DNA of 64,000 bases from Takakia lepidozioides (taxonomy: Eukaryota; Plantae; Bryophyta). The notes below the pieces were generated by a model. The model did no database searches and had not been told where the DNA came from. It saw only the letters and a list, made by a program, of their open reading frames with translations. Made by a program: the position numbers and the translations under genes. Location: the NCBI GenBank assembly GCA_030704615.1, contig CM060732.1, positions 30,628,001 through 30,692,000 of the forward strand, given 5' to 3'. Positions 2,306 through 25,499 of the stretch are shown here, in pieces (within the stretch, counting starts at the first letter, position 1; each line of letters begins with the position of its first letter).

Positions 2306-2380
2306 GGTGATCCTTCTCCCAATCTGCATGAATCTCGCTTGACTGTCGTACCAAGTAGACAGGATATGAGAGATCCCTTG

Positions 2381-3811
2381 AAAATTGGGTGCGGCAGCGC
2401 ACTCAGTTTTGAGGGGAGCTCTATCACTTCCATTGTGGGCCGAGGTGAATACGTAAGTCTTAGAGGCACCAGGATCTGCAATGGAAGCCTGAGAGGGACA
2501 CGAGGAAACTGAGTGTGGTGGCGCACTCATTTTCACATGGATGCTAGGAGATCGCTTGGGCATTAGGGAAAGAGGAAGGTGATGTTCGCAGTTTAGGTCC
2601 GAGAGACAGTGGAGTGGTCACCCAGAACTGAGTGCGGCCACCGCACTCAATTTTGAGCACCATGGAAATCATTGAGTTGCTATTGAATGAGGTGAACGGT
2701 AGATAGAAAGTGTGTTTATTCCATAGTGAGATCTCTTATGAGTTCTAAGAATCACATTAAGTCTAACCTGGAAACTGAGAGCTGGGCACACATAGTTCTC
2801 ACGTGTGATTGACATCTTTTTGACAGACGTGAAGACCCCATGAACTCAAACAGAAGTAAGTAGGCAGACAAATGAAGGGCTCCCAGAACTGAGTGGCGCC
2901 ACCGCACTTAGTTCGGAGCACCATAGAATGGTCAGTTTGCTTATGAGAGAGGTGAACTACGATAGTTAGAAAGTGGGTTTCATTCAAAGTGAGATCTCTT
3001 TTGAGTTTTCAGATAGACAGAAACGATAACCTGAAACTGAGTGCGTCGGTGGCGCACTCAGTTCTGAGGTGAGGTCAACCATGGACATGGACAGAGGTAA
3101 AGACCCTGGTGTGCTCGCACCAGATTGAGGAGACAAAGTGGAGGGCTCCCAGAAATGAGTCTGCCAACGCACTCAGTTCTCCCCTGAGGTTAACCATGTA
3201 CGTGAACAGAGGTAAAGACCCTGGTGTGCCGCAACAGAAAGCAGGCAGACAAAGTGGAGGGCTCCCAGGAAGATGAGTGCGCCGGCGCACGCAGTTTTTT
3301 GAGCACCTGTAAGATGGTTGATTTGATGATGTCTGAGTGAACTATAAGGTGCAAATGAGTGGAAATTGGAAAGCATTCTTTTTTCGTATGGGAAAAAAAT
3401 CAGAACACCCTGGACATGAGTGTGGTGGCGCACTCAGTTTTAACAGGTGGACCTCCAGCAGAATATTGAAGACCGTAGATAGGTCGAGTTGATTTTGGAA
3501 TCCGGTTTTTAGCTGAATATACATTGTATTGTTTTGCGGTGGTGGCGCACTCAGTTTCGCCTCTAGAATGAAGCACACAATGTGGAAGAAGAAGGACAAA
3601 GGAGCCATTGACTGTGTGAGATGGAGTTGTTGCCTGCAATGAACATGATGTTCATAGATTGTCATGGAAGGTGTCAAAAAATGAGTGCCCCACCGCACTC
3701 AATTCCGGTTGACAGGAAATGAGGGTTTATTATGTGGTTTGGAGAACTGGATGTTTGTCTGTTCGATCCTTTGTCAGTGCTCGAAAGTGAGTGCCGCCAC
3801 CGCACTCAATT
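2381..3811. repeat. Array of ~12 palindromes AAC/ATGAGTGCG-N(4-8)-CGCACTCAGTT spaced ~107-148 bp apart
   Basis: Copies start at ~2381, 2505, 2624, 2771 (degenerate), 2885, 3033, 3151, 3271, 3414, 3534 (half), 3677 and 3784. Further intronic copies lie at 882-907 (perfect 12-bp arms), ~6232, ~7919 and ~8059. Confidence 0.9.
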
Positions 3812-3862
3812 CTTGTAGGTGCCAGATCAGGAAAATGGAGCTGTGGAATGAAGGAAAGGCTT

Positions 3863-4290
3863 TGTGCATATCCTGCGATCATCCACGACACCACATTTCA
3901 ATCAGCCACATTGTCAAATACTCCCTTTGCATCCTCAATGCGACCACACATTTCGCATCCATACTGTTCACCAGGGCAGTGTCCAGAATGACATTTGGTA
4001 CAATTCCAGCTTTGATGATGTCACCATGCACCCTTTGCCCTTTTCCAGGGCTGCCAGGCTTGCACAAGCATTGCAAACGCACAGAAAACGTGATGTGGTT
4101 GTACTTTCACCCGTTCCCATCATTTGCTCATAGGTCTCAAGTGCCTCCCTTTTCCCCAGGCCTCCATCCCGCGTCCCTGTTGTGCATATCCTGCAAGCAT
4201 GACGTTCCATGACACCAAATCTTGATTAGCCATATTGTTGAACACTCCCTCCACATCCTCAATGCTCCCACATTTGGCATACTTCTAACA
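3863..4290 (-). pseudogene. PLS-class PPR fragment (5' part of the broken paralog whose 3' part starts at ~9950)
   Basis: Reverse complement is near-identical to the PLS repeats at 14.5-15.75 kb ([39 protein letters not shown], ends at AGYAQ); contains indels. Confidence 0.9.
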
Positions 4291-4291
4291 G

Positions 4292-4994
4292 ACACACATA
4301 ACATGAAGGCCACCACATTCCCTATTCCCCCCTCCCAACCCATTAATCTTCGCCTCTACCCTCGCTTAAACTCATCCCAACATGGGCTAGCATGCTCGCC
4401 CGCCCACCCGCCCCCCCTACCATACCTGTTCACACCGACCTCCGATATCCCAGACGGATCTCCCTCTCAGATACCCACCTGTCCACTCCCACTACACCGA
4501 CGGATCCCTCATCGCAGGTCCCAGGGCTGGGTATGGTATCTATCACGCCGCTACCAACCAAGGCACCTCCCTACATCTCCCTGGCCTGGCTACCATCCTC
4601 CGTGCCGAGCTCATGGCCATACATGATGCCCTCACCCAGCTCTCATCATTCCCCCCACCCCACTATATTTTTACCGATAGTCTCACATCACTCTTTCTCA
4701 TTCGTAATCACCTCCATCGGCCCTCATCTCACCACTACCACTCCTCGACCGGAACCGCTGCCATCGTTCATATAGCTATCTCCATAAACCAACCCATCCA
4801 TTTCCTTAAAGTTCGATCCACACCGGCATAAATGGCAACGAAATGGCTGACTTATTCGCCCAGCGAGGGGCCACCCAGCCCGAGGTGGACCCTACGTTGG
4901 ATCCTATCCATGTTGCCCACACCCACCCATTCTGGTTCATCCACCCCGTTCCAGGCCCTACGGAACCTCGCCCCATCCGCAACCTCTCAACCAC
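4292..4994 (+). mobile_element. Non-LTR retrotransposon (LINE) fragment with RNase H domain
   Basis: Frameshifted RNase H motifs: DGS (~4452), RAEL.AI, YIFTDSLTSL, FLKVRSHTGINGNEMADLFA. Confidence 0.8.
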
Positions 4995-5579
4995 CCTTAC
5001 TTGCGAAGCGGGGATGCTAGAGTGTGAGCCTAGCCACGTGAGCCCAGGACACGTGGCATGATTTTGGGAAAGATGCGGCGTCTATTTCCGTGGAAGAGGA
5101 TCCATTACCGCAGAAACACGTCTTCATCCATATTAACCCTGCAACCCCAAACATAAACCCTAACCCTTGTCAGCCTTAGGGACCCACCTCAACCCCGACA
5201 GTGAACCTCGTCATCCTGCCCCTGTGCATGATACTGCGCACTGACATCATCCATGGGACCATCCATGCATGCAACATTCATCCACAGTGTACATCCAATC
5301 GGGTTCATCATCCATCCAAAACATTCATCCTCCATCCATCCAACCAAATATTGCTGTGATGGCATATGTCGAATGACTGTCTACTGGACTATGCATATTC
5401 ATCTGTTGAAAAACTTTTATTGAATGCACACGGTTGAATTGGAGAGCAATGTTTAGAAGGAAAACACTTTCAAATTTGCAGGACGCGGGGGAGAGAATGT
5501 TTCAATTCAGGGATGTGAATTTCATTGTAGTCCGTACTCATTACAACGGATGGTGGGAAGAGAAATGGTGGTGCAACGG

Positions 5580-8500
5580 AAAACGGAGAGTGTGTCCCCT
5601 CATGTTCCATAAATGAATACCATCAAGTACATCCGTAGGTGGTGTCAACACTACTACTGCTACCTCATGAATCTGCTGAACTGCTAGAAGTACTGCTACC
5701 ACCTGAAACTGTTGCACTATCATCTATGAAGACCTTTGCGCGGAGGTGCCTGAGCGTCTTCCTGGAACTCCAACGCAAGGGTGGGGGAGAAAGCACAGCT
5801 GCTTGCACACGAGCAATGCCTTCCGCGCATAGTCGGGAAGGACATAATTAGGAGGTGGGCTCCAGCACAAGTCCCTCAAGTATATGGAAGACAGGGGCCA
5901 CGGGAGTGCGTTCACATTCCTGCAATCAGAAATGCACCATTTGGGTAACAATCAGACAACAGAAGGGGACGTGACAGAGCATATACATAGGGATCAAATA
6001 GACAGAAAATGAACTTACTCACATGAAAAGTCATTGTCCAGGTCCTTATCGTCTCCGTCGAGGATATCAATTTGCGCAGTGACATCCTTGACATTGGAGG
6101 TAGATGCGCCCCCTTGCAACTCGGCGAGGAGGCCAGTGAAAATAGCTGCGTTTCCTTCAATACCAAACAAGTGCCTACCACCTGCCTTGCAAGCATGGTA
6201 AGAAGTGCCAGAAAGAGACAGAATGAAGGAATTATTGAGTGCTTCAGCGCACTCAGTTATGGCGGTGACTTTGAACCCGTTCCATCCGGAATGGGTCTGC
6301 ATTCCCACCCAGATGTGCTATGAAACATTCCTCACTAATTATTGTCCTCTTCATCGCAGACCCGTCTATTTGAGGTCGTCTGTCTCGTGAGGGTACATCC
6401 ACTATCGACTCCCACCACAGTGGTGGAGTTCGAGCTTCATGGGGGAGGATGTTTCATAAACGAGAGGTTCAATCCTGTCGTCGACGACATGCACTACAAC
6501 TATGTCGACTCCAACGTATGTTTGCGAAAGCCAAATGGAACGCCTTGGAGAGGGGCCCGTGAAAAAAGCCCGGCTTTTATCCAAACGATCATTGAGAGTT
6601 GTTCTCGGCCAGGAGCCCGCATCATAGATCTCACTCTCGGCACATGTTTCTCTTCTTGCCTTTGTCATCGATTTCTTTTCTTCTGCACCTTCTTTACTCA
6701 ATATTCTAAAATTCAGGCAGTGCGAACAACATGACTTCATAACAGTCAGTACAGTGGAACTTCAACAGATAAGGCATAAAAACAAAGTATTTGAAACCAC
6801 CTTCTGCCCTGGGCAATCCCCCTTCGTCAGATATAGGCTGTTGACACAGTTCCAGGTCTTGATAATCCGCATCCCCGAGGCTTTCAAGTAGCTTGCCAGC
6901 TCCCGGCGACATCTCATCGTGACAGATTGTATGATAACAAGAACCCCTGCATCAGAAAGGATAAACTTGCAAAAGGAAAACATCCAACTCCAATACCTCT
7001 CGTCAAATTTGTTCCATGTTGGGCAGGTGTCACTGGGCAGAATATCCACAATAACCATCTCCGAAGCAAACGGTTTCTGTGCATCATTCACCCAAGATTC
7101 CTTCCTCCTCCATGCCTGCAAGCAATATAGCGTGTAAGAAGGGGAGGATGTTTTATAAGCGACATGTCTGATCCGAGTACAAAGAAAACAAAGAAAACAA
7201 AACTCAAACACATGCATGACAATTGCTTACCGATTGGAGAAAAGCACATAGCTTGTCCCACGTTTTGGATGGATCACCACTGTAACTTGACTTCCGTGTC
7301 TCCATCATGGCGAGGAACCCGTCGTTTACCAGCTCGCACATGCCCGGAAAAATGATTCTGGATGTGTGCTCCATTGCATCGTAGGGCTCTTTTAGACCCT
7401 TCTTCTTTCGGTCAGGCTTTTTGGCTGGGGGTGGGGTCTGCACTGGCCCCGGTTGCACCACAGACTCCTTCTCATTGTCATTTGGATTGTTTTTCTGCCC
7501 CTTTACCTTCCCTTTCCCCTTGTCCTTTCTACGCTTCACTGGCGTATTCTGTGCAAGAGGCTCTTTCTCAGCCAATATCCTCAAGTTTCTCTCGTGCAAC
7601 TCCTTCTCCATCAGAGGGGCCGAGGCCTCTGCATTCTCGTTTTGATTTCAGGTCACAAGCTCAGACCAAGGGCATCCAGACCATGGGATATCCATATACC
7701 AGCAGCAGTCTCGAAGATGCGAGGTCCCGTAATCCTTCAAAATCCTTGCAGTGTACATTGTCTGAGCGTTGGATGGGTCACACCATAGGTCAATAAAGTG
7801 CAGGTGTCGACTCAGGTTCTTGTCTGGAATGAGAACGTTCTTGATGTACCTACACAATCAAAACAAAGGGAATGTTAGTGAGTAGGGAAAGCGTGAGATA
7901 ACGGTTTAAGGACCCCTTGACTGTGTGCGCCAGCGCACTCAATTTTTGGTCTGTCCACCCAGGCCCTACTTACAAGCCAGGGCAGGTGTGATTCAGTAGA
8001 GGATCGGATGTTCGTATGTTGAATGAAAGCTTGGGAGACACAGAAGTGGCCACCCTTTTACTGAGTACGTCAGCACACACAGTTTTGGGACTATTTATTC
8101 AACAGAGCAGGGCTACAACGACATCGAAACTTCGTGAGACAGGAACGAAGGGTGGAAAAAGATTGTCAAGATGAACCTGTATAGAACCCTCTTCATGGCC
8201 TATTCTGATCCATGCTGCTGCTCGAAGTCGTTAGTGCGCGAGATGCCTCCCTCTTTGGCGAACTCCCTGAAGAAGCAAGTGCCGAAGCAAGCTGCTTTTC
8301 ACTGGCGGACGTAGTCTTCTAGAGTATCCGTTGGTGGAGTCATTGTTATCTTGTAATCGTTCAGCTGCTTCTCCAGCACCAGTTGTGCCCGAGCCTCTAT
8401 CTGCGCAAGAACAGTTTTACAATTCAGAGAAAAGATTTTTAAGAATAGTAAGTGACTTTTCCCGGTGCAATGCAGATTTACAGTGGAAATGGAAAGGGGA

Positions 8501-9954
8501 GAGGAAAAAACCTGTGCCCAGTACGTGGCTTTGTGCAGCCACATATCGAGAACATGGTCACTGAATTGCTTTATGACTCCTGTTTCCTTGTTCTTCTCAC
8601 TCTTCGGAAAGCAGTGGTTATCTTTCACTGTCGGGTCGGCGTTCCAAATCTCAAGCCATTTCACTTTCACCTCTAGCTCCACTACGGCAGTGGACAGGCG
8701 ATGAAGCTTCTCCTGCATCATTTCGGGCTTGGTGTTCACGTTCCAGTGGATCCTGACCTGATTCAAGAACTCTGGGCCAAAAGCAGGGTCGGCTATTCTG
8801 AGTTGTTTTACGAACGCGCTCATGTAGTACCTCTTCGCCACCTCCATCTCCTTGTTCATAGATTCTTCCATTCATTTTGAGGATCGCTCCCATGGGTCTT
8901 TTTTGGCATAGTACTCTGTTTCCCTTTCTCTCCAGCCTCCGCAATCTCTTGCTGAACATTCCAGTATACAACTTATTAGTCAACTGGTTTTATGAATGAA
9001 CAAGTAGACAGAGCTAGGGAAGGAATACTTATAGCGTACATGTAGTCACAGAAAGCCTCCCTGGTCAACTTGTACCATGTGTCGGCGGATTTGGAGGTCT
9101 CGCACTTCTTGTAAGCCTCAGCACTGATAAGGTTTTCGAAGGTGACCAGTGGCATTTGGCCCACCTTCTTTATCCTGAATAGAGTGTGGACCAAATTCGT
9201 CGTCACGTGTGCACTTTCGGTTCCCCTGCAATCCCACACAAACACTATAACTTCCTCCTTCACCAGGAAATACAAAACAGACAGAACAAATCGGAGAGTT
9301 CTGATGGCATGAAGGGTGAGCATTATACTTACTTGATGATGTCATGCATAGCCGTCAGAAGTGCTGTGACGTTTCCTTTCGGATCTAGCACCATAGACGC
9401 AACAAGGTAGTGCCAGTCCTCGTCTGTGCTGTGATATTTGTTTATGACGTTCATCCAGGCCATGAAGCGGTGATTGCCATCCCAGATATGAAACATTTTC
9501 CCGGAGAACACCTGTGTAGATAGTCTCCTCGAAATCTGGGCTTCGAACTCCTCGTTTATTTCTCGCCATATTGATCCCAACTTTTCACAATTGACTTGTC
9601 CACCAAGACCTCGTTTCCATTGGCATCGCACAAGGACACGTAAAACACGGGAGACCCCTCTATGTATCCGTGACTAAAATCTTGCTCCAACTTGGACACA
9701 TCCCCGGTCAGGGCAGGACGAACGATTGGCATTGATATTAGGCGGCAGAGAGGGATCATAATCTTGCCTCCAGGTACCTGCATAGACTTGATCACCTGCG
9801 CGGAATTGACCTTCTGGTACACGAGGACCTTTGCCGCTCGCTCTTCGTAGAAATGATCGTCTTCTTCAACAGGCTTCACAGTCACTGCCTCCTCCTGCTG
9901 CTGCTGCTTCTCAGGCTGCAATCCTTTTCTTTTCTTCCCCTGCACCTGCCACAA
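5580..9954 (-). pseudogene. ParB/sulfiredoxin-like domain plus beta-class amino DNA methyltransferase-like fusion gene, copy 2 (long form, multi-exon, decayed, one exon inverted)
   Basis: 9954-9330: IPLCRLISMPIVRP...VSKLEQDF..GY...FHIWDGNHRFMAW (ParB/Srx DGxHR signature). Helical exons at 9230-9030, 8965-8515, 8400-8180 and 7850-7230. MTase exons at ~7117-6801, 6360-6645 (now on + strand) and ~6210-6018, all paralogous to copy 1. Contains stops and frameshifts. Confidence 0.75.
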
Positions 9955-10668
9955 TTATCACCCGCATATGTGTTCTCTCTGCATATAGCCACACTGGCCT
10001 ACTGAATGAAGGAAGACGCTACTCCCCCCTGAGTCAAGATCATGGTGTTACCCTGCCAGTAAAGCACTTTGGATGCATGGTGGACCTTCTGGACGAGCAG
10101 GACAAGTACATGAGGCAGTGGACCTGATTAATATGCCAATCAATCCAGATGTAGTGGTGTGGAAGGCCTTGCTTGGTGCCTGTAGAATCCATGGCAATGT
10201 CGAGATGGCTGAATGTGTGGCAACATCTATCCTCAAGTGGGATGGGCAGGATGCCGCGACTTATGTGTTGCTATATCAAACATCTATGCTACAGCTGGCA
10301 GGTGGGATGATACTGCAAAGGTGAGAAGATGATGAAGGTCAGAGGGGTTAGAAAGGAGCCAGATGACAAGATGCATCCCAAAATTAAGGAAATCCATGCT
10401 GAGCTGAGAAGATTGTCTGGCCAGATGAAGGATGCGGGGTATGTGTCGGGCACACGTTTTTTATTGCATGATGTGGAGGAAAGGAATTTTCTCTTTGCCA
10501 CCAAGGCCATTGGTTTTGGGCTGATCAGCACGACTCGTCAAGAATCTTCGAGTGTGTGGAGACTGCCACACCTCCACCAAATTCAAAGATTGTTGGCCGA
10601 GCAATTGTTGTATGGGACACTTTCCACCACTTTGAAACTAGGATTTGTTCTTGTGGTGATTACTGGTG
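9950..10668 (+). pseudogene. PPR L2-S2-E1-E2-DYW pseudogene (3' half of paralog); 3' flank also duplicated to ~11250
   Basis: Colinear with 15815-17175, with deletions (PG box, HSE region) and frameshifts; ends TGTTCTTGTGGTGATTACTGGTGA (CSCGDYW*). Confidence 0.9.
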
Positions 10669-11469
10669 AAAGGATGTTTTCTTGGAAAGATGCTAAAGTC
10701 TTGCTTCATTCATTGATCCGTGTACCCTACTCAGACCATCCACCATTTCCTGAGAGTACTGACCATCATGTACTGTTGAGTGCAAGATGCAAGTGTCTCG
10801 CTTCATTCATTGATCTATGTAGCTACTCTGACCATCCACCATTTCCTGATAGTGGGGTCTACCCGGCATAGGTGGGAAATCAGCCCACAATTGCACTTGA
10901 CTGAAGGGGTGATTTTTGACTGATTCCGGCGACAGTGGATGGAAATCAGAGTGCTGTCCTAATTCTGGGTTTGGGTGGTGGAGCTTCTCCAAAGCTTGAA
11001 GATGGAAGTGAATACGAATTTTAAAGAGCTTGATGAGAGGGGCAACCCTATGCACAAGTTTGCTCAACATCTTGAATTTAGACATGTTTGTTTGTTTCTC
11101 GTGGTGTGGCTTTGGATGGAGCCCTTGACGAACTTGCATGAATATTGTCAAAAGCTAGCCTTAACCCACCAAGATCCAATCCCATGGTGGATGCTTGAAA
11201 CTTCATACAGTGAATGTAAGGGTATTTGGGTATGTTGTTATTGGTTGATGTGGCTTGTGAAAATTGAACATTGAAATGCAAATCCGCCATTTTTCTTCCA
11301 GAAAAAAACAAAACACAGGATCTCTGCATGTAACACCGTGGGGATGACCCACCCTTTTTTTGTGAAAAATTGAACGTAGTTCTCAGAATTCGTGGCTAGT
11401 AGTGCGGAGCAACGCCAAGCCCTAGTTCCAGTATGTAATCCAAGTCGTTCAAAAAATAAAATTAGCCAA

Positions 11470-11649
11470 GACGACCTGCGTGTAGCCCAATGGTAATGGG
11501 CACATACCATGTTGGATGTGGTTGTGGGTTCACGGTCTGGTGTGTCATGAAGGTGTCCACCTTCCTAGCGGAAGGCAGTAGCCCTTGGGGGTGAAGTGAC
11601 TCCATAAGGTAGGCTTCCTTCAGGAGGCGTCATACTTTTCTTTTTTTTT
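11470..11649 (+). mobile_element. tRNA-derived SINE-like element (~180 bp) with poly-T tail and 11-bp TSD
   Basis: A-box-like TAGCCCAATGG (~11483), degenerate B-box GGTTCACGGTC (~11528), T-rich end. AAATTAGCCAA is duplicated at 11459-11469 and 11650-11660. Confidence 0.7.
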
Positions 11650-11934
11650 AAATTAGCCAAAGGCGATGTCACATCGCTATCCGAAAGGAGGTGGCTAAGT
11701 TATTGCATGCCTTGGGAAAGTGGCAATTGCATGTGGGGCCCATTTGGCGGCTGCATGCAAGTGCTAACCGCTAGGAGCCATCAGAACGGCACGACGACGA
11801 ACCGGTGGTCGACGTAGGGCCCCAACCCCTGCCACCTTGGAAGTGCACAGTAATATCCTTGTTGAAAGTTCGGTAAAAGCACACGTTTCTTGAGCAGAGT
11901 TTGGAGTTCGTCGTTCCTCATCGTGTAGAGCCCA

Positions 11935-14900
11935 ATGGAGCCCAAAACAACTTGCATGAATGTTGTTGAAAGCTCACTAGCACCCCTCAGTAAAGGACCA
12001 TGTCAACATGTTGATGCTGTCGGATTTTCGATCACAAACCTCTACCTTGGAGCACGGAGCAGAGCTGGCATGAGTTTTTTGAAGATCCTTCACGAGGGTG
12101 GGAGAACCGCAATCGCAAGGTGTGTCTTTTTCTCAATGTACGATGTGAAGAATTTTGTCCATTCTGCAAATGTGGGCTCTTGGCTCCTGTTAGTACCATG
12201 ATTTGGTATTCTTCCTGATGTTTACAAGGTTCTTGGGAGAGTCAGCGTGGTCTTAGCAGGCCGTGTTTCTCATCTGCACCGTGGTGGTTCTCACAGACCA
12301 ATCCGAGATTACCTCACTACAGACACAAGTAGCACACACAAGAGGTCCTTTTGGGTTGATGGTGGGTCAAATCCTCCATGGGTCATGACACAAGGTCAAG
12401 GACAATGTGGTGAGGGCGCCTTCTTCTTCGACCTATTTCAGCCTGTTTTGCGCTCTCATCACACTCGGCCCTGAATTTGCATATTGAATAGGGTGTCTGC
12501 ATCCAAGTTGTAGCCTTTCATTTGCCATATGTTGCAGTGGATCTGTGGTGGTTTGGAATGAATTTGACAAGTTAGTGCCGATGTGGCAGCAGGAAAGTAT
12601 CCAAAAACAGATAACAGAGACGAGGAGAAGCTTTGGAATGAACACTTCTCGGACGTCAGTCAATGGTGGGACAATGGAGACAAAAAGGTGAATGCTGTTG
12701 GAAGCAGATGCAAGTCAGCATAGAAACTAGTGTGATAAGTATGGTTGGGGTGTTTGCTGGAAGAATTCTAGGCTGTCATTGTCTGTTGCTAGCAGCAAGG
12801 CAAGGATGTATGCATGATTTGTGCAGAGGCATGGATAGCTGAAGGATCAGGGATGGAGTGTGGGTCCAGATTCATCCAAGAGGGCCAGATTTCAAGCACA
12901 AGATTACCTATGATTCCCTGTGGATCAATAGCTACAAGAAACCTGCATGGGTAGATGGTGAACTGGAAGCCTCAGCAGCAGCGGCACAATTGATAAAATC
13001 AGGCACTGCTAATGCAGGCACCTTCTTCAACACATTTCACCCTATTTTTCCCTCTTATCAGAACCGGCCCTAAATTTTCATGTTGAATTCTGCAAGTTAG
13101 CTGGTTGAGTAACCTTTGATAGTTTGGAGGTGACTTTGACATGATACTGCCAATGTGACACAGGAAAGTATCCAGAAACAGGTAACGGAGACGAGGAGAA
13201 GCTGTGGAAAGAATACGTTTCTGACCCCAGTCAATGGTGGGACAATCGAGGCAAAAAGGTGGATGCCTATTGGATTACAGAGAGTAGCAGACGCAATGAG
13301 CATAGGAACTAGTGTGATAAGTATGGTTGGGGTGTTTGCTGGAAGAATTCTAGGCTGTCATTGTCTGCAAATCAAGGATGTATGCATGATTTGCAGAGGC
13401 ATGGATAGCTGAAGGAGCAGGGATGGAGTGTGGGTCCAGATTCATCCAAGAGGGCCAGATTTCAAGCACAAGATTAGCTATGATTCCCTGTGGATCATTA
13501 GCTACAAGAAACCTGCATGGGTAGATGGTGAACTGGAAGCCTCAGCAGCAGCGGCACAATTGATAAAATCAGGCACTGCTAATGAAGGCATCTTCTTCAA
13601 CACATCTCACCCTGTTTTTCCCTTTTATCAGAACCGGCCCTAAATTTTCATGTTGAATTCTGCAAGTTAGCTGGTTGAGTGAACCTTTGATAGTTTGGAG
13701 TGACTTTGACATGATACTGCCAATGTGACAACAGGAAAGTATCCAGAAACAGGTAACAGAGACGAGGAGAAGCTGTGGAAAGATTACTTTTCTGACCCCA
13801 GTCAATGGTGGGACAATCGAGGCAAACAGGTGGATGCCTGTTGGATTACAGAGAGTAGCAGACGCAATGAGCATAGGAACTAGATAAGTATGGTTGGGGT
13901 GTTTGCTGGAAGAATTCTTGGCTGTCATTGTCTGCTGCTAGCAGCAAGGCAAGGATGTATGCATGATTTGCAGAGGCATGGATAGCTGAAGGAGCAGGGA
14001 TGGAGTGTGGGTCCAGATTCATCGAAGAGGGCCAGATTTCAAGCACAAGGTTACCTATGATTCCCTGTGGATCAATAGCTACAAGAAACCTGCATGGGTA
14101 GATGGTCAATTAAAGGCAGCAGCTGCAGCGGCACAGCTGATAAAATCAGGCACCTCAACCATGACCACAGCTTCTGGAAGAGGATCAAGAGAGGGAGTCC
14201 ACAATTCCTCTTCTGCCACTTCTGGGCATGTGAAGATGCTTTGTGAGGCAGGCAGACTGAAAGAGGCTCTACAGACTTTAAACCAAGGAGGCATTTCAGC
14301 AGATTCAGGAACGTATGTCTGTCTCTTGTATAATTGCATCAAGGTGAAAGACCTGGAAGCTGGAAAGCAGGTGCACAGTCACATTATCCAAAGTGGATTC
14401 ACGCCAAATGTTTTTCTCCTCAGCACCCTTGTCAACATGTATGTTAAGTGCGGGAGCATCATGGATGCCCACCATGTGTTCAACAGAATGCCTCAACGAT
14501 CTTTGATCTTGTGGAATATAATGTTGGCAGGATTTACCAAGCATGGGTGTGGTAGGAATGCTTTGGAGACCTATGAGCAAATGATGGGGGAAGGGGTGAA
14601 GCCCGACCGCATCACATTTGTGTGCGTTTGCAGTGCATGTGCAAGCCTGGCAGCCCTGGAAAAGGGCAAAGAGGTGCATGGCGACATCATCAGAGCTGGA
14701 ATCGTACCAGATGTGATCCTGAACACTGCCCTGGTGGACATGTATGCCAAATGTGGGAGCATCGAGCATGCAAAGGGGGTGTTCGACAATATGGCTGAAC
14801 GAAATGTGGTGTCGTGGAGTGCGATGCTCGCAGGGTATGCACAGCAGGGGCGAGGGATGGAGGCTTTGGAGATGTATGAGCAAATGATGTGCGAAGGGGT

Positions 14901-16636
14901 GAAGCCCAACCAGATCACGTTTGTGTGCGTTTGCAGTGCGTGTGCAAGCCTGGCAGCCCTGGAAAAGGGCAAAGAGGTGCATGGCGACATCGTCAAAGCT
15001 GGAATCGTACCAAATGTCATCCTGAACACTACCCTGGTGGACATGTATGCCAAATGTGGGAGCATCGAGCACGCAAAGGGAGTGTTCGACAGTATGGCTG
15101 AACGAGATGTGGTGTCGTGGAACGCGATGCTCACAGGATATGCACAGCAGGGGCGCGGGATGGAGGCTTTGGAGACGTATGAGCAAATGATGGGGGAAAG
15201 GGTGAAGCCCAACCACATCACATTTGTGTGCGTTTGCAGTGCGTGTGCAAGCCTGCAGCCCCTGGAAAAAGGGCAAAGAGGTGCATGGCGACATCGTCAG
15301 AGCTGGAATCGTACCAGATGTGATCCTGAACAATACCCTGGTGGACATGTATGCCAAATGTGGGAGCATCGAGGATTCAAAGGGAGTGTTCGACAATATG
15401 GCTGAACGCAATGTGGTGTCGTGGAACGCGATGCTCGCAGGATATGCACAGCAGAGGCGCGGGATGGAGGCTTTGGAGACGTATGAGCAAATGATGTGCG
15501 AGGGGTGAAGCCTGACCACATCACGTTTTGTGCGTTTGCAATGCGTGTGCAAGCCTGGCAGCCCTGGAAAAGGGCAAAGAGGTGCATGGCGACATCGTCA
15601 GAGCTGGAATCGTACCAGATGTGATCCTGAACAATACCCTGGTGGACATGTATGCCAAATGTGGGAGCATCGAGCATGCAAAGGGGGTGTTTGACAATAT
15701 GACTGAACGAAATGTGGTGTCGTGGAGTGCTATGATCGCAGGATATGCACAGCATGGTTGTCATAGGGAGGTCGTGCAACTATTTGAAGGAATGCAAAAG
15801 AACGGCTTGAAGCCGGACAGTATCACCTTTATATGTTCTCTCTGCATGCAGCCACGCTGGCCTACTGAATGAAGGAGGAAGACGCTACTTTGATTCCCTG
15901 AGTCAAGATCATGGTGTCACTCCGACAGTAAAGCACTTTGGCTGTATGGTGGACCTTCTTGGACGTGCGGGACGACTGGATGAGGCAGTGGACCTGATTA
16001 CTAAAATGCCCATCAATCCAGATGCTGTGGTGTGGAAGGCCTTGCTTGGTGCCTGCAGAATCCATGGCAATGTGGAGATGGCTGAACGTGCAGCAACATC
16101 TATCCTCATGTGGGATGAACAGGATGCCGCGACTTATGTGTTGCTCTCAAACATCTATGCTGCAGCTGGCAGGTGGGATGATACTGCAAAGGAGAAGAAT
16201 GATGAAGGTCAAAGGGGTTAGAAAGGAGCCAGGTCGCTGCTGCATTGAGGTTGGCAACAGGGTGCACACCTTCGTCGTAGCTGACAAGTCGCATCCCAGA
16301 ATTAAGGAAATCCTTGCTGAGCTGATAAGATTGTCTGGGCAGATGAAGAAGGCGGGGTATGTGCCTGACACGCGCTTTGTATTGCATGATGTGGGGGAGG
16401 AGGAAAAGGAATTCTCTCTTTGCCACCACAGTGAGAAGCTGGCCATTGGTTTTGGGCTGATCAGCACGACCCCCAGGACACCTCTCCGTCTCATCAAGAA
16501 TCTTCGAGTGTGTGGTGACTGCCACACCTCGACCAAATTCATCTCAAAGATTGTTGGCCGAGCAATTGTTGTACGGGACGCTAACCGCTTTCACCACTTT
16601 GAAGATGGGATTTGTTCTTTGGGGGATTACTGGTGA
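11935..16636 (+). CDS. PDF-motif (OSB-type ssDNA-binding) x3-4 fused to a PLS-class PPR-E1-E2-DYW (PG-type) organellar RNA-editing factor; frameshifts in this assembly; start uncertain
   Basis: Inferred exons: ..12119, 12297-12409, 12593-12687, 12870-13002, 13164-13258, 13440-13572, 13735-13829, 14017-16636. Spliced motif [20 protein letters not shown]|[28 protein letters not shown]. The last PDF half runs in-frame into PPR (ORF 14005-15405). DYW has KEPG, SHP, HSEKLA, CGDCH, RFHHF and DYW. Frameshifts near 15260, 15500-15530, 15830-15880 and 16190. Confidence 0.85.
12580..14150 (+). repeat. Three tandem ~570-bp units, each a two-exon PDF module
   Basis: Near-identical exon and intron sequence at ~12580-13150, 13150-13720 and 13720-14150; ORFs [15 protein letters not shown] start at 12858, 13428 and 14005. 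Confidence 0.95.
14560..15755 (+). repeat. Four near-identical 303-bp (101-aa) P-L-S PPR triplets
   Basis: AAAGGGCAAAGAGGTGCATGG recurs at ~14661, 14964, 15268 and 15569. Confidence 0.95.
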
Positions 16637-17889
16637 AAGGATGTTTTCTTGGAAAGATGCGAGTGTCTTGCTTCATTCAGTGATCTGTGTAGCTACTCAG
16701 ATCATCCACCATTTCCTGGGAGTATTGACCATGATGTACTGTTGAGTGCATTTCCTGTGGCATATCCACGGGAAATGATAGTGGGGTCTACCCGGCATAG
16801 GTGGGAAGTCAGCCCATAATTGCACTTGACTGAAGGGGTGATATTGGGCTGACTTTGGTGACAGTAGATGGAAATCAGAGTGCTGTCCTAATTCTGGTTT
16901 GGGTGGTGGAGCTTCTCCAAAGCTTGAAGATGGAAGTGAATACGAATTTTGATGAGCTTGTTTAGAGGGGCTGCCCTATGCACAAGTTTGTTCAGCATCT
17001 TAAATTTGCAGATGTTTGTTTGTTTCTTGTGGTGTGGCTTTGGATGGAGCCCGTGACGAACTTGCATGAATATTGTCAAAAGCTATCCTTAACTCACCAA
17101 GATCCAATCCCATGGTGGCTGCTTGAAAGTTTTATATAGTGATCGGAAGGGTATTTGGGAATGTTGTTATTGATTGATGCCGCTTGACTCCCTCACAAGA
17201 AGTGATACTGCCAGTGTCGGTCCACCGACGCAGGTCTCTATCACTGGTGTGACTCCCAGTGTTCTCAGTAACTACTTGAGCTGCCAATCTCAAACAAGCC
17301 CAAGAAACCCTCCTGAATTCCCCTTCATGAAAAGTGAGGTCTTTTTCTCTTCCAGTAACCATCCAACATCCCAAAACCGAAGCTTTTGGTCCGTCATGTT
17401 GGTTGAATTAATATCAATTAAATTACACCCAACCAAGGGATATTCATGTGAATAATGAGAGGAAGATATGGTTACTGCTCCTCCTTTGGCTGTGAGTTTC
17501 AGAAGGATTTGTAGCTAGTTGTGGTGCGATGCTCAATTGTTGCGCAAAGGGTTGGGAGTTTTGTTTCAAGTTTTTGGGATAAAGTAAGCATATAGGAATA
17601 ATGCCACTAAAGTTTGCGGGGGCCCTATCCATTAGAGGATGGTCTAGGACCTAAAAGGGGGGATATATGTATCCCAGCCGCATGAAAAATAAAATCGACT
17701 AAAAGGGAGTTGACATCTGCGAGTTTGTTTGAAACTTATGAAGCCAGTGGTAAGTGACATTGGCCCCACGTGGCTGTTTGATGTGGGGGAGAACGTTGTA
17801 GAGTAGAGAACGTTCTAAGAGAGCCGGGAAAGTGTTTCGGTAGTCGCACCAGAACTCTACCAGTGTAAGAGGAGCGTAGTGGACAGTAC

Positions 17890-19239
17890 GAGAGACTGCA
17901 GATATCTAGATCCTGTGAATCAAAACTAATAGCGTTGAACCTGAGAGACAGAAAGCTAGAAAAGAAGTGATGTTGAGATGTTCTAAGGTGCAGCTAAAAA
18001 GATATGCAAATTGGCAAACAGACAGAACGACTTAGATGCTAATCTAATATGCAACACTAGAGAAGGAGTTTAATGCAATAGAGACAAAACAACCAAATGC
18101 AATGGAACTAGAGCAATAGATGATAGCAAACCTAAAGCTCAACAGCACAGAGCCAGAGACATTAACCCTCAAATGCAGAATAGTAGCAAATCTCTATAAA
18201 GTCCCATACTAGTTTCGCTGAACAATTGAGCTCATCAGTGGGAGAGAAATGGAATGAGGTACACAGAGCCTCACCCCCAGCTTATATGTTGCTGTAAGGG
18301 GTTGTCTCAAATAGGCACAAGCCTAGAATAGGTAAAAGAAAGTAATTTTTGTGTCTAAAAGATAACTTTATGCCTAAATAGAAAAAGATAACTTTTAAAG
18401 CCTAAAAATGGCTTGATGACGATAGTCAATAATCTCTCTCAAATATATAGGTAACTCATTGTAAACTTAACACAAATTAGATAAGAATATAAATCTCGAG
18501 TCTTTGTTCAAACTAAAAGCTTGTCAAAAGAAGCTAACTATAGAACTTTAGCAAAGCACTAACGAAGTTTAGGGTTTAGGACGTCCCTAAGATTTAGAAT
18601 AGAGTCAACTATGATTAGATTGAAAAGTCAACGGTGTAGAATGTTGTGCAAAGTCACAAGGGCTCACATACTCCAAGATAGAAAAAACTCGCGAGAGCCT
18701 CAAGCATGCAGATGAACATAGAACAATTGCTTGATCTAGGTGAAGCCTGCAACCGTGTTTCTTCTTGAAAATGAGCTTTAAAAGAATGGAGACAAATGTA
18801 GGAGTGCAACAAGATGCGGACCGCGAATGCACCGGGTGCGATAAGAACACAATCCGAACCAAAAGTTTTTAGGGAGGCCGGGTATGGGCGCCTTGAAAAC
18901 ACTTGTAGATATCTAGATCCTGAAAATCAAAACTAATAACGTTGATCTTGAGAGACAGAAAGCTAGAAAAAAAAGTGATGTTGAGATGTTCTACTCGATG
19001 CAACTGCATAGATATGCAAAGAGGCAAATATATGTGATTGAAACTCTTTCACTGGGATGACATGAGAATAGTACCATATCTCTTTTGCAAGAGAATAGAC
19101 ATAATAGAGAACGACTTAGATGCCATCTAACACGCAACACTCGAGAAGAAATTTAAAGCATGCAATAGATGATAGCAAACCTAAGGCTCGTTAAGAGAAT
19201 GGAGACAAATGTATCAGTAATGAAGTTTAGGGTTTATGA
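17890..19239. repeat. Host tandem repeat (units up to ~1.3 kb ending GAAGTTTAGGGTTTAG); left portion
   Basis: 17890-18582 and 18583-19239 are homologous to 30888-32168 (GATATCTAGATCCTG...GAGAGACAGAAAGCTAG; GGAGACAAATGTAG...). Confidence 0.8.
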
Positions 19240-19324
19240 TGTCGTGCGCATACGTATCGCTACACAACTACATCGCTGTCCAAACTACACCACACATATA
19301 TGCACAATAAAGTAGTCTACCACA
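19240..19324 (-). repeat. Extra terminal copy B2 of the first ~85 bp of the LTR, joined after the 3' LTR
   Basis: Matches 19679-19761. The element-strand junction CTTATCA-T-TGTGGTAG is an LTR-end/LTR-start fusion. Confidence 0.88.
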
Positions 19325-19325
19325 A

Positions 19326-19761
19326 TGATAAGAAAACTAAGAACACAGTGTTGACACAAGAAACATGAAAACCAACACCATCACTCTTTAAAATAGTAGT
19401 CGAGCCAGGACACCCCAAGCTATGGGGACTCCACCCCACAACAACCTATCCTCCCTTCATAAGCATACTCAGCTTCTAAAGCATGAAGGAGCTCGGTCGC
19501 GCAGGCTAAACTCGAGAGAGATGAGCTGCGCGACTGACGCTCTCGTGAAGATAAGATGGTTCAGGTGTCAAGCTCAAACTTGACACCTGACTTAACACTT
19601 GAACTAAATCCAAGTGTTAAATACAAATAACTAGTTTTATTCTAGTTAGTTTCACACTGTGTTTATTTAACTTGACAGCGTCGTGCGCATAGTATCGCTA
19701 CCAACTACATCGCTGTCCAAACTACACCACGCATATATGCACAATAAAGTAGTCTACCACA
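19326..19761 (-). repeat. Complete 3' LTR (TGTGGTAG...CTTATCA, 436 bp) = B1 (19761-19679) + A2 (19677-19326)
   Basis: Starts 2 nt after the PPT with TG and ends CA. The A part matches 30531-30883 (about 8-9 differences by eye); the B part matches 19240-19324. Confidence 0.88.
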
Positions 19762-20019
19762 ATCGCCCCCCCTAGCTGGTGGATAGGTCCCTCTAACTCC
19801 AGATAGCTACAAGATGTAATAGCCACAGCCGTACTAAGTCCCCTATCACTGTCCCTGTTGTACTCAAACTCTGTAGACCAAGAGGCCGGGTACAAGAGTA
19901 ACCCCATCGTTAGTCGTCGTCTTGCAATCTGTGAACTTGAGCCAGGATATCGTGTGTTCAAGGTCTCCTAGTAGCTTGGCCTTGCGTTTCTTGTTAGCCT
20001 TCCATTGTATCCAGTCCCA

Positions 20020-21300
20020 CTATCCAATGCAATGTGGACATAACCAATCCCCATCCGGAACCATCTCAAGAGGTGGAGTCAAGCATCCCATATGCCAACC
20101 TCTAGAGCATCGATCACACACCAGCATGGTGGCTGCCCCTCTAGCAGACCCACACAACATGCACCTCAAACTTGCAGATACCACTGCCAGGTTTGGGTCA
20201 ATCCTGCCATCGACATTCAGAATGTGACATGACGCACAATTACGCACATGGTCCTTCCAAGTTATGCCATCCCGACCCTCCAAGACCAAGATGCCTGAGG
20301 GTAAGACCTCTCGAACCCTCAAAATAACACGTCCTGCAGTCTCATCCAAGGTCGTAGGAGCAGTTTGCTGCAGATAGACGTAGTCACCAGGGTTGAATCT
20401 CCGAACCCCAGGACGATAGCCCCCACCACGTATGGTAGCATACCTCAACGTATCACGGTGTTGTGCAATGACAAGGTTCTCGAAAGCCATGGGCATGACT
20501 TTCTTGAACAACTCTGCACGCTGCTCACATGCACGTGCCCCACATCCGGATCGTCAAGATTAAGAAACTGTAGCAGCTTCTCTGCGAATGGATGTAGGCA
20601 AATCTGGCTCTCGGCCAAAAGAAGAAGAAAAATATGGTGAGAAGGAGGCAAGTGATGCTTGCTTGCTGAACCTGTAGCCCATGGCTAACCAGGGTAACTG
20701 AAGGTCCCAATCTCCTAGGTGTCCCTTCTGCAAGCCATACTTGCGCAAACCCCTCTTTACTGTCTGAACAACTCTCTCTGCCAAGCCATCGGCCTCAGGA
20801 TGATCCCGAGAAGTGGTGCAGTGGTCTATCAAGGCCTTGTCACACAAAGCCTGAAACTCCCCCAAGAACTCTCTCCCTTGGTCCGTGAATACCTCAGCTG
20901 GAGCACCGAATAGGCTAAGCACACAATCCAAGAATGCATACGCAGCTCCCTCACTAGCCTTATCAGGCAATGGAATCAACTCAATCCACTTGGATAGGGC
21001 TCCACCATCACCAACACATACTTGGGTGGCGCATGGTCAGTGGCAACAACCTGCGAAGTCAAGACTCCTGTAGCCCAATCCCATGATCGGAAGAGGGGTG
21101 CAATTGTGGAGTATGGGCGTTGAATGAAGCACGCACCCTGTCACACACCATGCACCTAGCCACAAATTGTTGCACCTCTGTGTGCATACCACGCCACCAA
21201 TACTGCCCCTGCAGTAGACTATGAGTGCGTCGCACCCCAAATGCCCCAACTCCTCATGGGCATGCGCACTAACCGTGCCCGTTGTGTTGGGTGAGGCACA
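20020..21300 (-). CDS. Integrase (HHCC, DDE core) with C-terminal PHD finger; frameshifted
   Basis: HEELGH..CMVC; SLDFAG; VFTDQGREF; HPEADGLAERVVQTVK; PHD CMLC..MLVCDRCSRGWHMGCLTPPLEMVPDGDWLCPHC at ~20165-20030. Confidence 0.9.
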
Positions 21301-21649
21301 ATCCTCACTCGACCATCCTCCCACACTCGGAGCAGATGTGTCTCCTCCCACTTGAACCTCTTGGCTCGTTGTAGGATCCGATCCCTTTCCTTGGCAGTCA
21401 CAGTGGCTGCAGTGTCTCCAGTGCGGAGGTAGTCCAACAACTGAATCCTCATGTATATCTTTGGCGTCACCTTGCTCATTGCTGGCCTCAGGGTCCTCAG
21501 ACACTTGATCTACAGTCCTCCCTGTTGCAGGTCCAACCTGGCCTTCCGCTGCCAAGATACACAGAAATGCAGATGCATGCCATCCGGGCACCATCCCCTC
21601 GTCCGTCTCACCATGCCACCGAGCTCCAGTGTCATCCTGTTGGCTCATG

Positions 21650-22930
21650 CATGGATTGCGACTCAACCCATCTGCATTGCGATTGACCAACCGGTCGATG
21701 CACCACCTGAAAGTCATACTCTTGAAGGATGAGTGCCCACCGTGCAAGCTTCCCTGTAAGCTTTCTGACTCCATCAATCTTGAGTGGTTGGTGATCCGTG
21801 ATAAGGGTGAAGAGATTGCCGTATAGATAGCACTGAAGTGTGCCACGGCCCACACTGCAGCTAAGCATCTCCTCATATGAGCTATACTTAGACTCTGCAA
21901 CGTTGTTCGAGCGGCTAGCATAAGCCATACGAACTCTCTTCCCTATCATCCCATGTGTGAGCACCGCTCCAAGCCCCAGCATGCTCCAATCTGTATGCAG
22001 CTGAAAATGACGCCCCTGATAGGTCGTCTCAAGATGGGCGCCGAGGTCAACCTCGCCTTGAGCTCTTGAAAAGCTTGTTCTTGCTCATCTTCCCACTGCC
22101 ACTCCTGGTCCACCTTGGTCAGCTTGGTTAGAGCCTTTGCAATGGCACTAAAACCCATAACAAAAACGTCTATAATAGTTTGCTAACCCCATGAAAGCTC
22201 GAACTCGGCTCACATCCGTGGGGCGTGGAACTGTGCAATGGACTCTACCTTAGGTCTGCTGTACCCCCAATCCTCCAGGATATATCATGTAACCCAGATA
22301 CTCAATCTGGTTGTGAAAAAAACTTGCACTTTCCCGGATTGTAACTTCAATCCATGCGCCGCTCAAGCACTCAATACCCCTGAAGGTGTCTCTCATGCTC
22401 CCTCCACCGTAGCACTAAAGATGATGATGTCATCTATGTAGCACCGAGCAAACTCCAACCCCTGCTAGAATCCTGTCCATGACTCTCTGAAACTCTGCCG
22501 AAGCGTTCTTAAGCCCAAATGGTAAGAACCGCCACTGGTATAGGCAATCCTTCCCGTGCTCATTGATCCCCCAGAATGTCCGTCTTTTGCTTCCGCCTCC
22601 TTGATCGGCAACTGGTGATATCCGGATCGTAAATCCAACGTGCTAAAGACCTTGGCATGCCCAATGGCATCAAAGATCTCCTCTGGTGTTGGCATGGCAT
22701 ACCTATCGGACTTGGTCTGACGATTTACAGGCCGGTAATCACCGCACATACGTCTCTCCGTCCAATTGCCAAAGACATCCTTCTTGGCTGGCATCACTGT
22801 GGCTGAAGCATACTCTCCCCCAGATAGCTCCACCAAACCAGCCTCCCAAAGGTCCTGAGTTCTCATCTGAATCAAGGACCTCTCCATGTCACTGTATCTA
22901 TAGGGTCTCCGAAAGATTGACGTGTCAGTA
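21650..22930 (-). CDS. Reverse transcriptase and RNase H (gypsy type); frameshifted
   Basis: RPYRYS, RMCGDYRPVN, STLDLRSGYHQ, LPFGLKNA, CYIDDIIIFS (~22441-22415); RNase H TDWS..GLGAVL, AYASR, ITDHQPL, NADGLSR. Confidence 0.93.
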
Positions 22931-23439
22931 GCCAATTCAATGCGAATCTCTTGACCCTTCAGTGCTCCTAAGTCTTCAAACTGAAGGCAAAGCAGTTCCT
23001 GTAAGCCCTCAAGAACCGCCGTATACGTCGTCTCTCTCCTTCCGGTGACTATAGGTCCAACATCAGGCTCCCAGTTGTCCTTCCGTACTGCAACCTTGAG
23101 TCCAGCAGGCTTAGAGGTAGAAGACACGTCCCGTGGTTGCTATGCTGCAACCTCTTGAGCAGTGACCACTGCCTCCTCTGTCAGTGACAATGTCTCATCC
23201 TGCCCCATCATCCCATCCTTGAGGACCTCCTCAATCCGAGAAAAATCCCCAACCTGATCCATCACCGCCGCCTTGGCTGCCAACTCCTTCTAAACCTCGA
23301 GCACCTCCCACGTGTGCCATGGATGCGGCCTGCACCTCGTGGTCCTCACCTGCTCGCCCCCACTCGCTGCCTGTACCGTCTCGGTAGGCAGGGAGACCAT
23401 GAAGGGAAGTGTACTCCGTACTCTGCGCTGCTCGGCCAT

Positions 23440-24400
23440 AGCCAAGCTGATAATCCAGGTCAAGCAATTGAGATCCATTGCTTGCCCCAACACCTGACGA
23501 CGTGATGCCTCAGAAAGAGATGGCACCGCCGTGGTACCAGTGGTAAAACCCATCCCGCTAGCTCGCGCTCGTCAGCATTGGGCTCACTAATTGTTGCAAC
23601 TGGCTATCCCACAAGAGGCCAGGTCCACCATCCCGAAAAGCATGGGATCCTGGGAAGCTGAGCAGTGTAGGTAATGCTGCTCGTGGTTGACCCACCCTAT
23701 TGACCACTGCCAAAGGCGAACGGTCATCGTGTCTCACACGTTGAGACTGCCTCCCTGTGTCCAAAATGCTATCCACTGTGAGGTGTGCTGGCCACTGCAC
23801 CCCATCAAATGCACGCTTGAGCAGTGCGGGTGGCATCAAGTTAGTCCACCATAGCCGTGGATGATGAGCCCATGACCCCACTGCAGCTGCATCCAGCAAC
23901 ACTGCTGACCCAAGCCACGACCGGACTTGATGCACACTGGCCATCACCCTGGCCCGAGAATCACCCATCAGTGGCACATTCTCCAAGATGTATGCTGGAG
24001 ATGCTTGATGAAGCTGCAAGTGGTGCAAAATCCGCACCATCTCCCAAAACAGACCCGTCCTCGAGTCTCGCAATCCATTGCCATGCCCGGCTGATGAATG
24101 CCCTTGGAAGGGCCAACCTGCCACTACCAGATCAATGGAGCCAACCCGCTCCAAATCCTGCGCCCCAGCAACGAAATGTCTGCTGGCAAGGCTTGTTGGT
24201 ATCCACGAACTGCAGACACTGGCAACAAATCAGGGTACTGCTGTACCAACTGAGCAACATGGCGTAGTGAGACGCGTCGTGCAGTCTCATCCCTCTCTAC
24301 ATACATGTAACATCGAACTTGTACACCTGCCTGCAGCACTGCAGCCAATCCAGTGCTGATCCCGCCAAACAAGTCCAGAAGGCATATGCCTTCATCCGGG
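23440..24400 (-). CDS. C5-cytosine DNA methyltransferase domain embedded in pol; catalytic Cys reads Phe in this copy
   Basis: Motif I LLDLFGGISTG; II YVERD; IV IDLVVAGWP(F)QG; DSRTGLF; VI YILENV; VIII HHPRLWWTN; IX-X MGF..GTT...RRQVLGQAMD. Confidence 0.9.
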
Positions 24401-24759
24401 CACTGCCACACAAGAGGTGTGGTGTCCAATGGCGACAACTGAGGTGGTCATAGTGCAATCACCGCACTCTCCTCTTCCCCTGACGGTACAAAGGCCTCTA
24501 CCCAGGCTTGTTGCACCGTCCATCAGCAGCCTGCTGCAAATCTTTGCCGTACCCCAAATGGAGTGTGAGCAACCATGGCAAGCAACTCCGCCATACCATG
24601 CATGTCATCTTGCTCTGCGGGAGGTGGCACATCCTCTGCATGGGCATTGCCCTCCAGCAACTCTCCAGGCCAACTAACAGCAGCTGTAAAGGCGGCTAGT
24701 GTTGGCATCCTCCCCCGCTGGGCAGCCGCAATACCTCCAATGAATGTCACAGGGAGCTG

Positions 24760-25130
24760 TATACGACGACCCTCCCCTGACTGCCATCCAGGCCTATAGA
24801 AAGCTGACTCCTCCCAAAAATCCAGGGTGAAGCCCATGGGGTACAACACTGCCCCACCAACCAGGACATCGCACGAGACCGCGTCTGTCACAATGGTCTT
24901 GGCTCGCATCACTGAGCCATCTGTAGGGTGATCCGGTTGTAGTCCAATGGCCAACTCACGCCGTGTCATGCCCCGAGCCTGCTCTGATCCTCCCAGAGAT
25001 GTCTGTATCTGGAAAGGACAAGGCTCCATATCCGCCTCTATGAGGCCCAAACCTGCAATAGCAGCTCTGCCCAACATCAGTGGCTGAGCTCCTGAGTCCA
25101 ACAAGACCCGCAGTGGCCGGTACTTCTTGC
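24760..25130 (-). CDS. Retroviral-type aspartic protease
   Basis: RVLLDSGAQPLML ... DVLVGGAVLYPMG within ORF 24523-25443. Confidence 0.85.
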
Positions 25131-25499
25131 CTGCCGGTCCACTCAAAGTGAAAATGCCATCCTGGTTGTCTAACAAGACAACTCCAGGTGTCACCATGGC
25201 GCGCTCAAAGGCTGGCCTAGCTGGCAACTCCGTCAACCTGATAGCTGCAGCTTGCCATGGCGCAGCCGTGGCAGTCTTGATCCTCAAATCCGAGGATCCC
25301 TCTGCCACTACACCTTCCACTAACTCCGTAGAAGATGAAGTGATCTCCCCTCTCTCACAGAGTGTTGCTGCTAGTCTGAACACTACAGCTGGTCTACCCC
25401 CGACGTCGCAATCATGGTTGCCGAGAACAGTGGGGCTTGACACACAAAGGTGGCTGCCCCCAACAACACACCGACTGCACTAGCCTTGGTAGCAGGTGT

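Follow-up and report, generated by a model that had tools for sequence, protein, structure and literature searches.

A probable decayed PPR-DYW gene with OSB-type PDF motifs upstream of its repeat array in the moss Takakia lepidozioides

Results

The stretch of DNA investigated here (64,000 nucleotides of Takakia lepidozioides, assembly GCA_030704615.1, contig CM060732.1, positions 30,628,001 to 30,692,000; in the following "the window") hosts at positions 11935-16636 of its forward strand a locus, in which several copies of the PDF motif of organellar single-stranded DNA-binding (OSB) proteins are followed by pentatricopeptide repeats (PPR) and a DYW deaminase domain. In land plants, organellar C-to-U RNA editing is carried out by PPR-DYW proteins, which are also under development as programmable editors. 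An earlier reading of the letters, referred to as the original prediction, had proposed an intact chimeric editor. Our analysis points instead to a decaying, tandemly arranged member of a family of PLS-E-DYW editing factors, whose PPR array is preceded by at least one OSB-type PDF module, a reading to which we assign a probability of roughly 0.8.

Four intron-split PDF units

OSB proteins consist of an SSB-like domain and one to three PDF motifs of 50 amino acids reported to be responsible for binding of single-stranded DNA (ssDNA), which is preferred over double-stranded DNA or RNA; ssDNA binding is known for AtOSB1/2 only (PMC4166229, PMC6963530). The definition of the motif was taken from these two reviews. 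Its consensus of ~50 amino acids reads W..FF.(D/N)P..WWDNR..K.....PDFKHK.....LW.....P.WV. A hidden Markov model (HMM) constructed only from OSB-type sequences (26 motifs from named OSB1/2/3 proteins and SSB-domain proteins) was searched against the six-frame translation of the whole window, with exons analyzed singly and never joined in any search.

The matches define four head-to-tail units of ~570 bp, spanning 12020-14104. Matches to the first half of the motif (profile positions 1-22) lie at 12057-12122 (E 2.5e-4), 12625-12696 (2.5e-6), 13196-13261 (1.3e-7), and 13767-13826 (1.3e-7), those to the second half (profile positions 23-48) at 12873-12953 (4.3e-10), 13443-13523 (6.4e-9), and 14020-14100 (1.3e-8). 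All remaining matches of this model across the window had E-values of 0.16 or worse. The first halves end in AAG/GT or CAG/GT and the second halves are preceded by CAG/ (the slash marking the exon border). The presence of GT and AG around every half indicates that a phase-0 intron of 177-187 nt interrupts the motif between profile positions 22 and 23.

Units 2 to 4, matched in both halves, contain the PDF signature residues. Unit 2 comprises exon A (12593-12687, 95 nt) and exon B (12870-12957, 88 nt, ending in ...KPAWVD with a candidate donor G/GTGAAC); in its first half, Gly replaces the Arg of WWDNR, which is invariant in an alignment of 114 motifs, and Val replaces a near-invariant Pro. Unit 3 has retained the conserved residues in exon A (13164-13258) and is completed by exon B (13440-13527), while unit 4, probably the original PDF unit of the gene, starts with exon A at 13735-13829 and continues into the long exon described below. 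In each of the units 2 to 4, exon A and exon B up to G/GTGAAC add up to 183 nt, so that a spliced array would keep the reading frame. Unit 1 reads PHY at the signature position. Its degenerate first half covers 12057-12119 with a GT donor at 12120, and its second half (12297-12387) appears dead, with PHYRHK for PDFKHK, a TAG stop codon at 12330-12332, and a frame-shifted remainder; the HMM recognized it only as two fragments in different frames (12291-12329, E 3.7, and 12343-12387, E 0.16). The predicted set of three clear motifs and one degenerate motif is therefore recovered in number, but the degenerate one is broken by a stop codon and a frameshift rather than merely diverged, and unit 2, counted among the clear ones, carries the two substitutions named above.

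A Pfam scan of the PDF exons returned no family, Pfam being without a PDF model. Likewise, no SSB or OB-fold coding sequence was found by Pfam beside the PDF units, the exons and the adjoining open reading frame (ORF) yielding PPR, E, and DYW families only.

PPR array, E/E+ motifs, and DYW domain

The second PDF half of unit 4, a linker, and the start of the PLS-type PPR array lie in one frame (window frame 1) at 14017-15254, within the ORF 14005-15405, as supported by the ORF itself, Pfam (PPR families down to 1e-50), and tblastn. This stretch is colinear with a protein of the lycophyte Diphasiastrum (P0006) at 45% identity over 428 amino acids, PDF half and linker included. At ORF residues 98-135 (14296-14409), the Pfam family Transpos_assoc (PF13963) scored 34.2 bits at a cut-off of 27.7 on top of a PPR repeat, which is probably a profile cross-hit and not a transposase domain. 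Part of the array is itself tandemly repeated: a 303-bp unit, corresponding to one P-L-S triplet, is present in 3.9 copies of 92% identity at 14560-15754.

The remaining PPR array and the E1/E2 motifs (15255-16218) are split over three frames and were delineated by tblastn, repeat alignment, and comparison with a paralogue. They are followed by the E+ motif and the DYW deaminase domain (16193-16636), defined by Pfam and an alignment with seven homologues. Pfam reported E_motif at 3.3e-11, Eplus at 2.5e-7, and DYW_deaminase at 1.3e-42, and the DYW region shares 60-69% identity with its homologues. The domain order of PLS-E-DYW editors, a PLS-type array followed by E, E+, and DYW deaminase, is thus present, in agreement with the assignment to this class of editors made beforehand. 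Of the catalytic and C-terminal motifs, HSE and CGDCH are kept, but the terminal CSC is altered. The statement that the last PDF motif shares one open frame with the array holds for its second half and the first PPRs, but the array reaches the DYW domain only across four frame changes.

Lesions in the coding sequence

The frame supported by homologues (tblastn, four homologues) runs through window frames 1, 2, 0, 1, and 2 between ~15255 and 16199. Alignment of five 303-bp repeats located the underlying lesions of repeat 4 in a lost G at 15255, an extra C at 15259-15262, and an extra A at 15266-15270, with a net effect of +1, as well as two downstream losses of -1 each, an A near 15502 and one base near 15526-15531. 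Comparison with an upstream paralogue fragment revealed the loss of TG near 15836 and of 2 nt in the purine tract 16192-16199. The successive frames are ended by stop codons at 15403, 15506, 15870, and 16219. In addition, three conserved positions of the DYW domain deviate from the seven homologues: the PG box has C for W, PGTP has R for G, and the terminal CSC reads CSL, all seven homologues having C at this last position.

At the 5' end, no in-frame start was found upstream of the PDF exons: the first half-motif of unit 1 is preceded by a stop codon 14 codons upstream with no ATG between, and the ATG at 11935 lies in another frame. Divergence among the units was also evaluated. Between units 3 and 4, the exons differ by 4.2-4.5% and the intron by 2.3%, with eight out of eight differing codons being nonsynonymous; between units 2 and 3, two codon changes are synonymous and 11 nonsynonymous. 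Judged from these comparisons, units 2 to 4 arose by very recent tandem duplication; their exons have diverged no less than their introns and show no sign of purifying selection.

Identity of the PDF motif

In a reciprocal approach, a profile of five PPR-attached PDF motifs was searched against 1.84 billion representative proteins, yielding 1142 representatives at E <= 0.001. Many of these are proteins of 250-530 amino acids with 2-5 C-terminal motif copies. The sampled matches included "protein OSB1, mitochondrial-like" (Populus), "protein OSB2, chloroplastic-like" (Telopea), "Protein OSB3" (Anthurium), "organellar single-stranded DNA binding protein 3" (Euphorbia), a streptophyte-alga protein, and several proteins with the SSB domain PF00436. 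Since the OSB-named and SSB-domain matches fit the reviewed OSB architecture, the motif in the window can be identified as the OSB PDF motif. This part of the original prediction stood up in both search directions, as the OSB-only HMM matches the window and the PPR-derived profile retrieves OSB1/2/3. The top match of the latter profile was a protein of Kingdonia uniflora (P0028, KAF6142360.1, 1160 amino acids) with 13 PDF stretches and a weak SSB match.

AlphaFold2, applied to the 114-motif alignment (P0161, residues 78-135), predicted a small alpha-beta-alpha fold with a pLDDT of 93.8, composed of a helix at 4-13, short strands, and a helix at 51-57. No meaningful relative of this predicted fold was found in the PDB (best Foldseek E 2.2, best VIA Z 2.8). 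The conserved positions are mainly aromatic (four Trp, one Phe) and basic (Arg, Lys), a pattern compatible with stacking on the bases of a single strand and with contacts to its phosphates.

PDF-PPR fusions in other plants

A complete PDF motif ahead of PPR repeats was found in public proteins of Sphagnum fallax, Diphasiastrum complanatum, and Adiantum capillus-veneris (P0008). The family was searched with the PDF region of the Diphasiastrum protein P0161 (957 amino acids; Pfam PPR, E, E+, and DYW) among candidates of 526-1675 amino acids. All 34 matches were PPR proteins, 18 of them with the DYW family PF14432; they belong to Diphasiastrum or one of six Sphagnum species and carry the labels "hypothetical", "unnamed", or plain PPR. 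The suspicion that homologues sit unannotated in databases thereby proved justified. With one to three copies per protein, their PDF motifs score 60-76 bits against the OSB-only HMM, equal to the motifs of OSB proteins. The second PDF half alone (ORF residues 1-45), used as query of a word-based protein search, gave no match, a null result rendered uninformative by the short query and the length window.

Nucleotide data extend this picture. One contig from the Logan collection (L002, run SRR4210093; protein P0040) contains a single ORF of 1371 amino acids, in which three PDF motifs are combined with a long PPR array. On two plant contigs from environmental assemblies (L003, L004), a GT-AG intron splits the PDF motif in the position and phase seen in the window, with the junction ...EK/VNAKYPDFKHK; the counterpart in the window reads ...KK/ at this point. 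A further PDF-PPR contig (L001) is intronless at that position of the motif. As the fusion is common to a moss genus, a lycophyte, and a fern, it represents a genuine architecture and not a local accident.

A full-text literature search, the coverage of which leaves out most subscription journals, returned no paper describing PDF-PPR fusions, which means not found and not proven absent. A replication review turned up by the PDF/PPR literature search draws no link between the PDF motif and PPR, and a 2026 kingdom-wide survey of domain fusions in editing factors (PPR, MORF, RRM, RanBP2) never mentions single-stranded-DNA proteins.

Neighboring features

Upstream of the locus, positions 9957-11257 (forward strand) repeat 15830-17186 in direct orientation, with 86-92% identity and at a distance of 5.87-5.93 kb. 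They represent the decayed 3' fragment of a paralogue (E to DYW, shortened by deletions of 5-48 nt), together with ~600 bp of shared 3' flank. The 5' part of this paralogue has been replaced by unrelated transposon-like sequence. On the reverse strand, a PPR-repeat remnant lies at 3862-4296 (27-49% identity in tblastn with P0161), and just upstream of it, at 5321-5292, a very weak PDF-like match (E 4.6) was recorded.

The remaining observations concern other sequences of the window. Translations of the ORFs at 20020-27083 (reverse strand) are retrotransposon-like, with integrase, reverse transcriptase, and protease-like stretches; the ORF 23558-24154 therein contains the residues ENVP, which resemble a motif of C5 DNA methyltransferases. 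Two further reverse-strand ORFs (32902-33342 and 38135-39595) share a near-identical coiled-coil N-terminal stretch, and the ORF 32547-33083 repeats the C-terminal tail of these coiled-coil ORFs. By sequence, part of an exon of the large neighboring gene ~5 kb away seems to have been duplicated.

Discussion

Comparison with known systems

The PDF motif is what the locus has in common with OSB proteins. In the latter, however, an SSB-like OB-fold is followed by one to three C-terminal PDF motifs without PPR or DYW parts, whereas in the window the PDF motifs are placed N-terminal to a PPR array and no SSB domain was found by Pfam, setting the locus apart from the OSB family. The gene structure differs, too: the phase-0 intron inside the motif is shared by the window, L003, and L004, while both PDF motifs of the Populus trichocarpa OSB1 locus (L005) lie within one exon. 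With PLS-E-DYW C-to-U editors, the locus shares the P-L-S repeats, E, E+, and a DYW domain with HxE and CxxCH, being distinguished from typical representatives by the N-terminal PDF motifs, the frame breaks, and CSL for CSC. The same layout (one to three PDF motifs, linker, PLS array, E/DYW) is found with the unnamed PDF-PPR(-DYW) proteins of Diphasiastrum complanatum (e.g., KAJ7558666.1), Sphagnum, and Adiantum. These are open frames in annotated proteomes, in contrast to the broken copy in the window with its young local amplification of units 2 to 4.

Weighing the explanations

Taking the lesions together, the locus is probably a pseudogene, that is, a decayed PDF-PPR-DYW copy unable to encode such a protein as it stands. 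The intact chimeric editor of the original prediction did not hold up against at least five frame-breaking lesions, the lack of an identifiable start, and substitutions at conserved positions of the DYW domain and the PDF motif. A working, expressed editor with three or four PDF motifs would require the frame breaks to be assembly errors. Such a protein would be in line with the compatible splice sites and phases of units 2 to 4 (183 nt per exon pair), the intact HSE and CGDCH motifs, the location of two indels within homopolymer runs, and the existence of multi-PDF forms as documented by the ORF of L002/P0040. Yet assembly errors would have to account for no fewer than six separate indels distributed over four sites, and those near 15836, at 16192-16199, and at 15255 (the lost G) lie outside mononucleotide runs; that several lesions are substitutions or losses outside such runs argues against a simple homopolymer error of the assembly. 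Conserved-residue substitutions (CSC>CSL, W>C of the PG box, R>G of the PDF motif) are no indel artefacts, the exons are no better conserved than the introns among the units, and no in-frame start is present. Consequently, we regard a functional editor at this locus as improbable.

Some observations weigh against our preferred reading as a decayed copy with an OSB-type PDF module. Indels may have been introduced by the assembly, and some of the lesions fall in short homopolymer runs (C4 and A5 at 15259-15270). The long exon is intact over its first 1.25 kb, and the codon differences between the 303-bp copies r2 and r3 are 7 synonymous and 12 nonsynonymous; both suggest that gene death may be recent only. 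Furthermore, pseudogenes may still be transcribed. As to the role of the module, a test of PDF function in a PPR context was not found in the literature searched.

Two further explanations separate the PDF exons from the PPR-DYW part by origin, and both are highly unlikely. Capture by a transposon of the Pack-CACTA or MULE type could have joined PDF exons and PPR array, making their junction a local accident, and transposon-like sequence does border the locus (1-9954 and a gypsy-like element at ~20-27 kb). We rejected this scenario based on the absence of inverted repeats of >= 40 nt in 9000-20000 and the conservation of the architecture, including the intron position, in other plants. The junction of PDF half, linker, and PPRs is moreover colinear with the Diphasiastrum protein P0006, and the flanking direct repeat turned out to be the 3' end of the neighboring paralogue and not a terminal repeat. 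Alternatively, OSB-like PDF exons might lie upstream of an ordinary PPR-DYW gene starting from the ATG at 14161. This ATG is in frame, and PPR-DYW genes of the ordinary type lack introns, but two separate genes are hard to believe in view of a second PDF half continuous with the PPR frame, the absence of any SSB or OB fold encoded beside the PDF units of the window (Pfam scan), and homologues holding both parts in one protein.

Proposed history of the locus

For the decayed copy, the following course of events can be envisaged. The ancestral gene would have consisted of one or more upstream exons, exon A with the first PDF half, a phase-0 intron of ~180 nt, and one long exon hosting the second PDF half, the linker, the PPR array, and E/E+/DYW. 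It may have started with one or two PDF motifs. Unit 1 is an older, decayed unit. The similarity of units 2 to 4, extending through the introns and ~24 linker codons, suggests that a 570-bp segment was duplicated twice in tandem in recent times; this segment would have included exon A, the intron, the second PDF half, and the ~24 linker codons. In the array, the 303-bp P-L-S triplet would have been amplified to about four copies, and subsequently frame-breaking indels and substitutions at conserved residues would have accumulated. The paralogue fragment with the same 3' flank indicates that the family forms a tandem cluster here, disrupted by transposon-like DNA.

Possible role of the PDF module and significance

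On the bound RNA, the N-terminus of a PPR array points to the 5' end, and an N-terminal PDF motif would thus sit upstream of the recognized sequence. In the intact relatives, it would most likely serve as an accessory binder of single-stranded nucleic acid at the 5' side of the PPR-bound RNA. Additional single-strand binding independent of sequence is the most economical model, and a tethering to ssDNA of the nucleoid, suggested by the ssDNA preference reported for OSB1/2, is an alternative; deamination of DNA by PDF-PPR-DYW proteins is the least supported of these options. At the level of the family, the N-terminal PDF motifs of PPR-DYW editors in seed-free plants might act as built-in single-stranded binders, either boosting RNA binding 5' of the PPR footprint or tethering the protein to nucleoid ssDNA for co-transcriptional editing, a tentative proposal that we consider doubtful at present.

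A widespread and old accessory module, for which we found no description, would offer a lead on substrate binding by the editing factors of seed-free plants. Being otherwise known only from organellar ssDNA-binding proteins, the PDF module would also be a candidate part for engineered editors. The value of the decayed Takakia copy lies in its record of the amplification of PDF module and PLS triplet by local tandem duplication. If the PDF motifs are indeed built-in binders, they might, by boosting RNA binding, do the job of the separate helper proteins of seed plants, and the locus would show how they can multiply, with an exon pair of 183 nt being copied in tandem and the reading frame preserved.

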